Shown piece by piece: positions 986 to 23,864 of a stretch of 64,000 nucleotides of DNA (the first letter of the stretch is position 1; every line of letters begins with the position of its first letter). Source of the DNA: Octopus sinensis (lineage: Eukaryota); NCBI RefSeq assembly GCF_006345805.1, contig NC_042998.1, positions 82,770,001 to 82,834,000 of the forward strand, given 5' to 3'. Below the pieces are notes generated by a model. The model worked only from the letters and a program-made list of their open reading frames with translations. It did no database searches and had not been told where the DNA came from. A program made the position numbers and the translations under genes.

Positions 986-1300
986 GTCACGTGTCATATG
1001 TATAACATAATATAATATACATATATACATACATGCATACACATATATACATATAGTACACACATATAGATATACATTCACACACACATATATACTATTC
1101 TTAAGCATAAAAGTTGTTGACAGTGATGTCGAAGATTCGGCCAGCTAAGACATCGCCGCACTGCGCAGTATAGGGAAGCTCATCAGAGTAATGTAAAAAA
1201 AAAGCAAATATCTATCTATCTGTCTGTCTGTCTATCTGTTTATCTGTCTGTCTGTCTATCTGTCTATCTGCCTGCCCACCTACATACATACATACATACA

Positions 1301-2171
1301 AGCTGAAGAAGACAGTAGACTTGACAAGAAGCGCAGCCTCTCTTGGACACAAGACCACTACATCACATCACATTTTGTAGGCTATTCGCTTGCAATCCAG
1401 GAACAGGGGATTGCCACAAGGTACCTGGTGAACAAGAGAGACGGTGACGCTCCTGCAGTCCCAGGTGCAACTGCATGTGTAGGCTATGTTATGTTTCTAT
1501 GGAAGACATTATGCATGTGATTAGCAGCTATCCTAAAATGTCATCACGGTACTACCACCCTATGCGACACGATGTTGTTGCAAAAACAATTCAAAATGCC
1601 ATCTGCAAAAAATACTGTCCTGAAATAAACTTAGAAAATCCCTCTGTTATGAAATACATTCATAAATACAAACTCAAGGAATACTGGTGAAATATTCCCG
1701 TCAAAACTTCTGTCAAATGTAAGCATAACGGGCTGGATGTTGTTGTTTGGGACAGAGGGGCAAAGGTATGTACCATCATAGAGGTCAGCTGCCTTGCATG
1801 AATGAATAATCTCTTTGAAAATCAAAGAAAAGGAAGATATCTATGGACAACTGCTCTAAAAACTCCAGCTTCTATATACAGACTATGAATTCATATTCAT
1901 ACCAAAAATAATTGGAATACTAGGTTTTGTTAGTAAATGCTTGAAGGAGAATCTGGATAAACTAAGATTTTCAGAAAGAGAAATCGATCTTCTGATTCGT
2001 ACGATACAAGTCCAATCTGTGAGTGGAACAGTAATATGCAAGACTTTTCTCAAGTTCCAAATGTGAATTTGTCTGTGCTAACTACATCCCAAAGAGGGAG
2101 CCTTGTATCTCTGTTGGAAACCGGATCCCTTCTCAGTGGAAGATTTATAATAATTAAAAAATAGAAGAGAT
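1301..2171 (+). mobile_element. 5'-truncated REL-endonuclease non-LTR retrotransposon (R2 group/R4-like), inserted in (CATA)n
   Basis: CRLC..ED..HV.S....RHD zinc knuckle followed by a PD-(D/E)xK-like region (KEYW*NIPVKTSVKCKHNGLDVVVWD..CTIIEVSC) and C-terminal SGTVICKTF. Flanked by (TACA)n at 1281-1300 and (ACAT)n at 2172-2260. Confidence 0.85.
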
Positions 2172-2805
2172 ATACATACATACATACATACATACATACA
2201 TACATACATACATACATACATACATACATACATACATACATACATACATACATACATACATTCATTCATTCATCAACATTTACAAATTTCTAATTTCTTA
2301 ATTTTTCCATTCAATTCTTTTTCAAAATTGTTTCAATGTTTTTTCAGTTCCTGCCTTTTACAGAACTGCTTTTACAGAACTTACTATAAGAATACGCCTG
2401 GAGTCAAAATACCTTCCAGCCATTTTTATTCCAGCCTGTTAATTGAATAAATCTGATGGTAATGCTCAGGGACAATTTTCTTTTTATCTGGCGCCTACAT
2501 AATCCAAAATTTTCTTCAGCTTCAGATTTTTTTTTTATTATTATAATAACCATAGAATTCTTAGAATGAAATCAACTGTTGTGAAGTAATTCTGGAAACT
2601 TTTATTTCCGTTTACTGTAAAATTTTAAGTAATATGACAGCAAATTTAAAATTATTATTTGACGAACATAGACCTGATAGGATTTCTGATGTGAATTTAA
2701 TAAGAATACTTTTTGATCACAGATACACACACATTAGCAAAGAACAGCTATACTGTATGGAGGAGGTCTGTAACGTTGTTTGTAGTATAGTTGTTTAGTC
2801 CCTGG

Positions 2806-3060
2806 TGGAGGCGCGTGGTTTAGTGGCTAGGGTAGTTTGCTCAAGATTGTGAGCTCATGAGTTCGATCCCGGGGGAACATTGTATCTTTGAGAAAGACAC
2901 TTTATTTCACGTTACTCCAGTCCACTCAGCTGGCAAAAATTAGTTGTACCTGTAATTCAAGGAGCCAGCCTTGTCACTCTCTGTGTCGCGCTGAGTCACA
3001 CAGGTTAATAGTTCAGCCACTTGCACGTTAATTTCTCAAGCAGGTTGCTCCGTTTCAAAC
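2806..3060 (+). mobile_element. tRNA-derived SINE (family C, head type 1)
   Basis: A/B-box-like head (tggtttagtgg; gagttcgatccc). Body shared with the copies at 33085, 47865 and 51024. Confidence 0.75.
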
Positions 3061-3269
3061 AGATTAAAACGCCGACATAAACGCTTATATTGTATAATAC
3101 CGCTGGCATTGATTTACTTTCGAATACTTAAGTTCTTCCTTACCAAAATATGAAGACACTTGCTTATTATCATAAACCTTTTAACAGAAGACACTGCCAA
3201 CATTCATAGAAGACATCCTAAGTTTTACTTAAATCTAACTCCATGCTGGCTGCTCTTTTTTTTTTTCAG

Positions 3270-3520
3270 ATGGGCATATGGCGTAGTAGTTAAGAGCGCG
3301 GGCTACTAACCCCAAGATTCCGAGTTTGATTCCAAGCAGTGACCTGAATAATAATAATAATAATAATAATAATAAACATCGAAAAATACCTTAGGAATGA
3401 GAACCCAAGTCCGAAATTTCCCTGAGACACCCGATGAAGGCTGAAAGATATATCAGACGAAACATTGTATTAACAACAAACAAGAGGGGAACAAATATCC
3501 GTCAAATGCAAATAAAGTAA
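3270..3520 (+). mobile_element. tRNA-headed SINE-like element with internal (AAT)n and a hammerhead-like 3' part
   Basis: tggcgtagtagttaag A box and gagtttgattcc B box, then (AAT)n, then acac-ccgatga-a-ggctg..cagac-gaaac-attgtat. Confidence 0.6.
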
Positions 3521-3959
3521 ATAAAATGCATTTTGAAAAATACCATTGTGTTTTCTTTCCAGAAATTTGGCGGTTATTTCCAACAGCTCGATTGGCCACA
3601 TAGAGGTTCTCTCGTTGATTTTTGCTGAATTTGTTTTATAGTTAAGAATACTTTGGTTATAGTAGTTAAAGAACGAAAATATTTTCTAAATAATTTCTAT
3701 TATTTTGTCTAATAAATTCTCCTTTTTAAAGAATATATTTTCTGTTGTACGATATGTTTTATTGGACTAAAAGTAATTCCAATATTAGTTGCTTTATTAA
3801 GACATTCGGTATTTCGAAGAAAATCTCTTTATCTCCAAAACTCAATATTGGCTCTGAAAGTTAGTCAATCTAAAAAGAATTTCGCCCTAACATAAACAAA
3901 CTGACTGTAATACTAAATGAATATAAATGTTTCCAGATACATATAACATCAAATTCTGC

Positions 3960-21316: not shown

Positions 21317-22063
21317 TTAACAACATATATAATATGTAAAAGGTATTACATATGTTGTTTCTATGGTATGCTTATGAGGCTGCCTGTGAATGATATAACA
21401 ACACCAAGCAAACATTTAATAGTAACTTTTATTTCGCTGCACAAGTAATTTTGAGGTTGGTCATGAATTATATAGTTCGACAATATGTCAACACAATTGA
21501 AAGAATAACTCAGTAGCGTTCATAAATAGTTGATTACAAAGCTTTGTATTAAAGTTTGTTAAGACAGGAAAAAATACACATAGTAGATTCCTATTGGCCA
21601 ATGGTATCAATATATCTATGCTGAGCAAAAAGTCGTGTAAACGATTATTTGAAACGGCAAGTGAAAGTGTGAAGCAGGGTCGCAGGTTATCATGCACTCT
21701 GAAAGTTGGCGCTAAAAACAAGCCTTTACATAATCTTGGTAGGAAATGTTTTAGGACCGTCTAGAATGATCTTTCACGTGATGTCTGGCTGCTGATTGGT
21801 CAATAACTCGACATCTCGTGTGAATATGGTTGTTGTATGTCATGACTTAAACTTCGTAATTTGACCACTCAGCTTCGAGTCTTGCTACAAATATAACACA
21901 CAGACACACATACACACACAGACACACACACACAAACACACACATATACAAACGCACACTCATATACACACAAATACACACACACACATATACATACATA
22001 CAAACATACACACACACACACACATACACACAGATACTATTTAATATATGAATGTAACAAAGA

Positions 22064-22283
22064 CGGCAAGCTGGCAGAAACGTTAGCACGCCAGGCAAAA
22101 TGCTTAGCGGTATTTCGTCTGTCTTTATGCTCTGAGTTCAAATTCCGCCGAGGTTAATTTTGCTTTTTTATCCTTTCAAGATCGATAAGATAAGTGCTAG
22201 TTGAACACTGGAGTCGATGTAATCAACTAACCACCTCCCCCTCCTCCGAAAGGACTGGCCTTGTGCTAAAATTTGAAACCAAT
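22064..22283 (+). mobile_element. SINE family A (tail type 1)
   Basis: Head gcaagctggcagaaacgttagcacgcc; tail gtgctaaaatttgaaacc. Confidence 0.85.
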
Positions 22284-22384
22284 ATGTAACTGTAACATAA
22301 AAATCTATCTTATTTACGATACGTATATAATTTTTCTATTATATTCTTTTTGTGTGTGTGTTACATTCATATAAAAATTATATA

Positions 22385-22646
22385 TAGGGTGTTTAAAAAG
22401 TCTCTCCGTAGTAAGTATTTTATTGCAAAATAAATATTTATAAGATGGTATAAGACTACAAAAGAATATATTGGACTTTACAAGACTTGAAAAAACTTTA
22501 TAAGGGGTGTTGAAAGTCTTATCCTTCATTTTTCAATGCACAAGTTGACTTTTCTACACATGTTTTGAAATACATCTTGGAGAGTCTGACTCCTGGATAG
22601 TCAGGATGAAAAAAATCCACTGCGGAGAGACTTTTTGAACACCCTG
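22385..22646. mobile_element. Tc1/mariner-type MITE
   Basis: TIRs agggtgtttaaaaagtctctccg / cggagagactttttgaacaccctg with TA flanks. Confidence 0.8.
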
Positions 22647-23324
22647 TATATATAACGTATAGAATTACACCGGTTCTTGTCAAATTAAATAAGAAAAACA
22701 ACAATTTATACTTCTCATACAAAGACACATTAATTCTCAATTTAATTACATTCTCCATTCTTTTCATAAATGATATATGCAACAGCAATTATTACACAGA
22801 TCTTCTATGTATCAGTCACTCTCTAATGTAATTTCCTGTGGAGGTTCGAGAACGTGGCAAGAAAACAAAACAAATTTTGTCCCCAGATGCAGTACTATAT
22901 CCTATGGTACTGATAACAAGATCCAAGAGTTTCAAAAACAAAATGGTAAAAAGAGGAACCATTGCAGAAACTTGTAACTTAATTCGTTATTTATGTGTGA
23001 ACATAGAAATATACAATGCGTGAACAGTAGATTTAATAATTTAACAAACGTTGGCAAGGATGACAAAGTCTTCGGGAAGATGACAGGACGAAAAACAAAT
23101 TGTGTTAATGCCATCAGGTAGCTTTTCGATAAATTTGTAATGTGGCTTGTTGGGAAGAAAGACAGCAGAACGAGAGTAAAAACTGGCAGCAGTAAAAAAG
23201 ATAAACAAATATTCTGCTTTATTTTTCTATATACTGGTTCAAGCCAGCAAACAACATACACACACACACACACACACACACACACTCACACACACACACA
23301 TGTACATAAATACATATGCATACA

Positions 23325-23543
23325 TGGGATATGTAACACACTGCCTAGATACCAATCTTGAGAAATTAGGCTTCCCAAAACAAGAAAGGGGAAAGCTGAT
23401 TCGAAGACAACAAATCCAGTCCATCACTGGAACTGTAAAAATCTGTAAAACTTTCCAGAAATTTATCATTTAAATATATATGAACATGTCTAGATATGTA
23501 ACAACATGTAGGAGAATATATACGTAAAACACACAAATCTGCA
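23325..23543 (+). mobile_element. Short 3' fragment of the (CATA)n-associated REL LINE
   Basis: Closely similar to the reverse complement of 6845-7065. 5' junction is gcataca|tggga; the 3' end is followed by (ACAT)n at 23544-23680. Confidence 0.88.
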
Positions 23544-23864
23544 CATACATACATACATACATACATACATACATACATACATACATACATACATACATAC
23601 ATACATACGTACGTACGTACGTACGTACATACATACATACATACATACATACATACATACATACATACATACATACATACAGTATAACACATAGACCATT
23701 ATTATATTTTAATAAAAGAATATGTACTCTGCGTTTATAATGTATAACGTTCTTTATTGATTTGTGGTCTTCATAAATGTGTTTCTGAGAATTACAGAAT
23801 TACACGGTGTTTGTATATATGTATACGACATACATACACATGTCATACATACATTTATATAGAG

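Follow-up and report, generated by a model that had tools for sequence, protein, structure and literature searches.

Does the genome of Octopus sinensis harbor a lineage of restriction enzyme-like (REL) non-long terminal repeat retrotransposons that selects (ACAT)n microsatellites as its insertion target? The question is raised by a 64,000-nucleotide stretch of contig NC_042998.1 (positions 82,770,001 to 82,834,000; hereafter the window), which holds three truncated REL copies, here termed c1, c2 and c3, each lying between ACAT-type repeats. By collecting relatives of these copies from other genomes and reading their junctions we find support for integration into (ACAT)n in one orientation. 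We estimate at about 0.8 the probability that c1-c3 are dead, 5'-truncated insertions from two octopod families of one R4/Dong-related lineage, which encodes a restriction-like endonuclease (RLE) within one open reading frame (ORF) and inserts through target-primed reverse transcription (TPRT) into (ACAT)n.(ATGT)n, the coding strand always being the one that reads ACAT.

Three REL fragments between ACAT repeats

The window has a G+C content of 36.6% and is very dense in simple repeats (89 rows of Tandem Repeats Finder output in 64 kb). The initial annotation had described three REL copies with homologous C-termini, one of them (c1) belonging to a diverged family, and our examination agrees on the sites and strands, except that the body of c2 is better placed as given in Table 1. 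The homology is likewise evident in the translations: conceptual translation of c1 gives LLYTDYEFIFIPKIIGILG together with GTVICKTF, and that of c2 gives LLYPDYRFRFIPVIIGALG together with GTVYICKTF; c3 begins 3' of the first of these motifs and has only the second, as GTVKICKTF. BLASTN aligns c2 with c3 at 88% identity across 219 bp and puts the DNA identity of c1 to c2 at about 64%; c1 thus represents a second family, separate from that of c2 and c3. All three bodies are truncated downstream of the reverse transcriptase (RT) region, and all are dead fragments, which for the window itself amounts to ordinary repeat annotation. The c1 reading frame has several stops and frameshifts in addition to its terminal stop codon (2064-2066), and its upstream part keeps, in mutated form, a CCHC...RHD...(P)D...E motif. 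In c2 the REL core is frameshifted and its RPD motif has become RPE (terminal stop codon 6915-6917), and the stop codon of c3 lies at 23471-23473.

A Pfam search with the window peptides gave no match, and to our knowledge Pfam holds no model of the REL domain other than zf-RVT. Scanning the window, four element-bearing loci and the 5' untranslated region (UTR) of L003, a near full-length relative described below, against Rfam recovered no ribozyme or other RNA family, the one match to mir-297 being a (TGTA)n artefact; nothing was found in a scan for viral contigs.

Read along the coding strand, all three bodies begin directly after CATAC(A) and run out into a long (ACAT)n (22 units in c1, 33 in c2 and 35 in c3, as entered in the junction tally). 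The 5' junctions read ...ACATACATACATACA|AGCTG in c1, where a (TCTG/TCTA)n array at 1209-1274 precedes the ACAT flank, 24 units|AATCCC in c2, and degenerate ACATAAATACATATGCATACA|TGGG in c3. The (ACAT)n tail and the start after CATAC(A) that had been noticed initially are therefore present in all three copies, but the 5' repeat of c3 is only degenerate. Arrays of (ACAT)n that are free of elements occur at 5227-5338, 19023-19157 and 29015-29046, and at least three perfect ACAT-type units precede 0.37% of the strand-specific positions of the window; two of the three copies match at this strictness, which for the window alone gives P of about 4e-5.

An (ACGT)n block interrupts the tails of c2 and c3 alike, at 13-16 units beyond the 3' UTR; it is absent from every other ACAT array in the window, and this common block suggests that part of the tail was copied from the source RNA. 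Directly 3' of the c2 array a 53-bp segment (6684-6736, minus strand) matches L001:10467-10519 from O. vulgaris at 43 of 53 positions (81% identity). c2 and L001 are truncated at different points and have unlike 5' flanks, and c3 is without the 53-bp flank. The shared segment could result from 3' transduction, from a subfamily with the array inside its 3' UTR, or from a common host repeat; together with the (ACGT)n block it suggests that a portion of the array is present in the RNA. Just upstream of the c2 5' array, positions 7451-7480 (minus strand) show a borderline match (24 of 30 nt, z about 3) to the end of the c2 ORF and the start of its 3' UTR, and could represent an older, very short copy into whose tail c2 then inserted.

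Junctions of relatives in other genomes

A protein search with the c2 peptide retrieved proteins of Octopus vulgaris, O. bimaculoides and Argonauta hians along with metagenome ORFs, a result that in itself marks the window as octopod, and searches with a longer relative (P0003) and with an RT-bearing ORF recovered a conserved family that includes intact ORFs. Loci were then fetched around relatives picked by protein similarity alone, such that flanks played no part in the choice. As a strict criterion we required at least three perfect ACAT units at the 5' junction, a condition that holds at 0.52% of strand-specific background positions; element-adjacent arrays were included in this background, which makes it conservative. 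Among the (ACAT)n-tailed insertions with a readable 5' junction, eight of nine have ACAT repeats of the same polarity there, and seven of the nine satisfy the strict criterion (P = 3.6e-15).

The eight repeat-flanked copies include two full-length elements, L003 and L022, in non-octopod assemblies, whose homologous 5' UTRs start (GAAGAGGA.GGAGCTC) immediately after the array. The phase of the 5' repeat is ...CATAC or ...CATACA in seven of the eight, and the repeat after the 3' UTR reads as beginning with ACAT, or can be so read in the case of c1 and L020. Comparison of the 200-bp segment preceding each 5' array with the 3' UTR of the same copy showed no similarity in six of the seven copies tested, c2 being borderline; hence, the 5' arrays are not generally the tails of upstream copies. 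The repeat thus keeps a fixed polarity on both flanks and recurs in independent genomes, and the sequence- and strand-specific integration proposed from the three window copies is supported by the tabulation of these nine 5' junctions against background. The suspicion that the preference is old also holds, because it is common to two octopod families and to non-octopod relatives.

The loci from the ENA assemblies have no other repeats in common with the window, which indicates that their hosts are not octopods. Loci L013/L014 and L020/L021 recur in ERZ25067561, ERZ25067570 and ERZ25878469, and these ENA metagenome assemblies must therefore contain one and the same invertebrate host genome. A scan of JGI metagenomes yielded six loci, with L007 alone informative for ACAT; the short octopus-like contigs L015-L018 from ENA and Logan were too degraded or interrupted for their junctions to be read; and in the Argonauta copy L002 no tail could be made out over the 1 kb that follows the stop codon.

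Table 1. Window copies, recovered relatives and the repeats that border them (positions are those of the window unless a locus is named)
Feature	Position	Strand	5' repeat	3' repeat	Description
c1 5' flank	1282-1300	+	(ACAT)4.5		Remnant of target microsatellite
c1 body	1301-2171	+			5'-truncated dead copy; about the last 255 codons and 105-bp 3' UTR
c1 3' tail or downstream part of target	2172-2273	+		(ACAT)22 (TCAT)3	
c2 5' flank	7345-7441	-	(ACAT)24, one GCAT variant		Same polarity as tail
c2 body	6846-7344	-			5'-truncated dead copy; about the last 143 codons and 69-bp 3' UTR
c2 3' tail	6738-6845	-		(ACAT)13 (ACGT)3 (ACAT)3 ACGT (ACAT)3 GCAT (ACAT)3	
c3 5' flank	23300-23324	+	Degenerate ACAT-like (ATGTACATAAATACATATGCATACA)		Follows an (AC)n array
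c3 body	23325-23542	+			Very short copy of the c2 family; last 49 codons and 69-bp 3' UTR
c3 3' tail	23543-23681	+		(ACAT)16 (ACGT)5 (ACAT)13	
Dong-like REL elements	39150-39827, 40721-43929	+			C-terminus ...LLGTAHILHKVL; RT piece 39875-40396
L001			(ATCC)n then ATACATACATAC, 3 units	About 5 units	O. vulgaris, c2 family
L003			(ACAT)58	(ACAT)27	ENA assembly, non-octopod; near full-length, about 3.95 kb
L011			45+ units	31 units	Same host as L003; 5'-truncated
L012			45 units	3 units	Another assembly
L022			(CATA)41	Off contig	Another assembly; intact 1151-aa ORF
L020/L021			No repeat	(ACAT)n	Same host as L003
L007			Off contig	(ACAT)n	JGI metagenome
L004			Off contig	ACATACAT(ACAG)n	ENA contig
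L005	401-476		(ACTT)18		5' end
L013/L014	L013:7226-7253			(CTTA)7	
L019 element A			(CTTA)6	(CTTA)6	Full-length
L019 element B				(CTTA)33	5'-truncated, directly after element A

Protein architecture, sister groups and predicted mode of insertion

To characterize the proteins we turned to the intact relatives P0080, P0081 and P0086, which are single ORFs of 1139-1158 amino acids (aa) with a conserved N-terminal region of about 70 aa, RVT_1, zf-RVT (CCHC) and a C-terminus of the type seen in the window. RVT_1 is recovered in these and in the L003 ORF with E = 3e-23 to 2e-25, and the best PDB matches of the RT are solved R2 proteins (E = 3e-28). The three ORFs show neither an apurinic/apyrimidinic endonuclease (APE) domain nor a match to Exo_endo_phos. 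An alignment of 47 sequences of the C-terminal region revealed (near-)invariant C50, C53, H62, C67, R79-H80, P135-D136, D157 (D/N), K163 and K167. For the last 245 aa of one relative, an AlphaFold (AF2) model (pLDDT 92.7) aligns structurally with the C-terminal region of R2Tg, R2Pm and R2Bm (TMq 0.66-0.69, probability 1.0), with weaker matches to other PD-(D/E)XK nucleases. With a single ORF, a RT of the long interspersed nuclear element (LINE) type and, C-terminal to it, a CCHC knuckle and a predicted PD-(D/E)XK nuclease, these elements belong to the RLE/REL class of non-LTR retrotransposons, consistent with the identity first assigned to the window copies. The N-terminal region of about 70 aa was modelled as a zinc-finger-free three-helix bundle (pLDDT 86). 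When 1.84 billion cluster representatives were searched, profile-free, with the C-terminal region, 48 clusters reached E <= 1e-30 and 607 reached E <= 1e-10, which implies that the wider group is large and mostly unnamed.

Among non-self sequences, Dong-like proteins come closest (P0109-P0111; about 30% identity, E from 1e-74 to 1e-83), and APE-type matches follow at E of about 1e-16, a ranking by protein search that would fit membership of R4/Dong, of a sister clade or of HERO. Dong, of the R4/Dong clade, occurs in Bombyx mori and also in other insects, molluscs, cnidarians and ostracods. Like the lineage described here, it has just one ORF (about 1100-1250 aa), which encodes a conserved N-terminus, RT, CCHC and C-terminal RLE, and it inserts in one orientation into a microsatellite whose unit is the element's own 3' repeat; the N-terminal W..E...W..P pattern also aligns between the lineage and the Dong-like proteins. 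Site-specific insertion into ribosomal DNA (rDNA) or a microsatellite, as is typical of R4/Dong, is seen in the eight of nine evaluable copies that are ACAT-flanked on both sides. In contrast to Dong proper, for which (TAA)n is both target and tail, tails and 5' flanks here are (ACAT)n, or (CTTA)n in a sister group. The C-terminus differs as well (...GTVKICKTF.KF in the lineage versus ...LLGTAHILRKVL in the Dong-like sequences), a long branch separates the two in a rough neighbor-joining tree, and both types coexist in the window, each in its own repeat, in keeping with the distinction drawn initially from the LLGTAHIL copies. A further trait of the R4/Dong clade is a Myb/SANT-like domain at the N-terminus, without zinc fingers (PMC7998251).

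The Dong-like copies of the window have (AAT)n before them (38713-38783), (TAA/ATT)n after them (about 44005-44076) and (TAA)50 inside (41362-41508); they sit in (TAA)n, in line with the literature on Dong (PMC7998251), and the LLGTAHIL-type relatives L008-L010 end in (AAT)n-type repeats. The (CTTA)n group is best displayed by L019:1-8150, which is a head-to-tail pair of the form element A-(CTTA)6-element B-(CTTA)33. In a rough neighbor-joining tree of the C-terminal region, computed with no bootstrap, the CTTA copies form one cluster with ACAT copies on both sides. Across three related groups (ACAT, CTTA and TAA) the 3' repeat is thus the same as the 5'-flank repeat. An inverted (AGTA)n/(GTAA)n block (4846-5038) is present in the long 3' region of L019 element A. 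In L003, L004, L011, L012, L013, L019 and L020 the last 10-25 nt before the repeat carry an AATAA(A)TA...(A)ATGAA-like motif, which may serve as a RT recognition or end-definition signal.

It is established for R2 that, once the protein has bound its target, a nick made by the RLE in one strand provides the 3' OH from which the element RNA is reverse-transcribed (PMC10499050). Drawing on R2 and Dong, we infer that the repeat would be bound by a protein comprising the N-terminal three-helix domain, RT, CCHC knuckle and PD-(D/E)XK nuclease, that its RLE would nick the ATGT strand, and that the (ACAU)n terminus of the RNA would anneal to the nicked strand. Synthesis of cDNA would begin at this pairing, with the result that the 3' UTR would always abut ACAT. 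Incomplete reverse transcription would yield the three different 5' truncation points seen in the window, and the upstream part of the array would be left as the 5' flank, mostly ending in ...CATAC(A). The nick site is likewise predicted by analogy, as is the component that reads the target, which could be a protein domain, tail pairing, or both.

Alternative explanations and place among known elements

Several observations weigh against insertion by TPRT into (ACAT)n. L020/L021 has the tail and no 5' repeat; the 5' repeat is degenerate in c3 and short in c1 (18 bp) and in L001; and the sample of evaluable junctions is small (n = 9). The 53-bp match downstream of c2 and L001 is not predicted by simple insertion into unrelated arrays. 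The N-terminal domain was not recognised as Myb/SANT by Foldseek, and a PDB profile search with it gave no significant Myb/SANT match. Moreover, in the non-octopod loci (L003, L011, L012, L020 and L022) every perfect array of at least three ACAT units adjoins an element and lies on the element strand; the arrays in those hosts may be largely element-generated, as products of earlier insertions.

An alternative that we regard as unlikely is that the targeting is real but RNA-guided, with weakly specific nicking and with arrays being selected by annealing of the (ACAU)n tail to the target. It would accommodate the identity of the tail and 5'-flank motifs in all three groups, the similar AATAA(A)TA...ATGAA end of the 3' UTR regardless of the repeat that follows, and the (ACGT)n block that lies within the tails of c2 and c3 at comparable distances from their 3' UTRs, by which the tail appears to be copied from RNA. 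It is harder to reconcile with R2, the best-studied relative, where N-terminal protein domains and the RLE set the site (PMC10499050, PMC7998251), and with the non-random 5' phase, which fits a defined second-strand cut; L012, with three units downstream versus 45 upstream, further argues that long pairing is unnecessary.

It is very improbable, in our estimate, that the 5' repeats are tails of older upstream copies or were created by template jumping or unequal crossing-over, such that tandem pile-ups would arise with no choice of microsatellite. L019 is exactly such a head-to-tail pair, the borderline 30-nt match lies upstream of the c2 5' array, and the ACAT arrays of the non-octopod loci all adjoin elements; the comparison of upstream 200-bp segments nonetheless leads us to reject tandem copies as a general source of the 5' arrays, and the window has (ACAT)n arrays free of elements. 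Besides, landing in an older tail would itself be insertion into (ACAT)n, which changes the origin of the array but not the preference. Finally, it is scarcely credible that an ordinary LINE with a microsatellite tail should have ACAT upstream by chance in a microsatellite-rich genome, and we reject this since, for all the extreme repeat density of the window, the degenerate repeat of c3 and the 18 bp of c1, a background of 0.37-0.52% per strand-specific position faces seven of nine junctions (P about 4e-15) and other host genomes show the same arrangement, there with 41-58 units per array.

Targeted insertion into (ACAT)n, which we prefer on these grounds, has several precedents among known elements. 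The RT match (E = 3e-28) and the superposition of the C-terminal CCHC/RLE (TMq 0.69) ally the lineage with R2, with which TPRT is presumably common; R2 (R2Bm, R2Tg), however, uses one 28S rDNA site and has N-terminal zinc-finger and Myb domains, whereas the present lineage uses a simple repeat and has a zinc-finger-free three-helix N-terminus. Microsatellite-specific RLE LINEs include Dong with (TAA)n, Togen with (TG)n and some HERO families (PMC4640811, PMC7998251). Togen, a NeSL-related element of fish, and the microsatellite HERO elements of leech are RLE LINEs that lie in microsatellites of other repeat units (PMC4640811). Waldo (WaldoAg1/2 and WaldoFs1, of the R1 clade) is stated, in a passage of PMC3812793 that cites Kojima and Fujiwara (2003), to target ACAY microsatellites. 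As Waldo is of the APE type and our lineage has an RLE and no APE domain, only the target motif coincides, and the shared target would be a case of convergence.

A repeat annotation of O. vulgaris reports abundant Dong-R4 and a few Hero families with no mention of targets (PMC13282606), and our literature search found no paper on an (ACAT)n-specific REL element, Repbase and Dfam entries being outside its scope. The novelty that had been claimed for the tetranucleotide target accordingly survives at the level of the literature, with the qualification that microsatellite-specific REL elements and the ACAY target of Waldo precede it: within a comparison that leaves Repbase and Dfam aside, what is new is the target, for elements of an already known kind, and not the kind itself. 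The further proposal of a programmable-insertion scaffold finds no support, the window copies being dead and the target a multicopy repeat.

We entertain, as less probable than not, the broader idea that these elements constitute a sister lineage of Dong that has yet to be described, is widely distributed among octopods and further invertebrate hosts, has switched between (ACAT)n and (CTTA)n on one architecture and has intact members extant. If so, they would supply a natural series in which target recognition by RLE LINEs could be mapped: the specificity determinant could be located by comparing the ACAT, CTTA and Dong-like TAA families or by swapping domains among them, and it would become answerable whether reading of the target falls to the N-terminal domain or to the RNA tail. 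Target-specific RLE LINEs, R2 foremost, are studied both as DNA-insertion tools and as models of LINE site choice. The lineage also bears on the abundance of tetranucleotide repeats in cephalopod genomes, given that the elements land in such arrays and may extend them.

Elsewhere in the window, tandem arrays at 35483-35904 and 32318-32569 consist, respectively, of 26/78-bp units (GTGACAAGTAAAAGACACCTGTGCCA...) and of a 76-78-bp unit beginning with (GT)n. Two adjacent ORFs occupy 58854-59921 on the plus strand, the second of which contains ...DRPIISAYNCPTELITRYLD..., a stretch reminiscent of a RT motif that may point to another class of retroelement.

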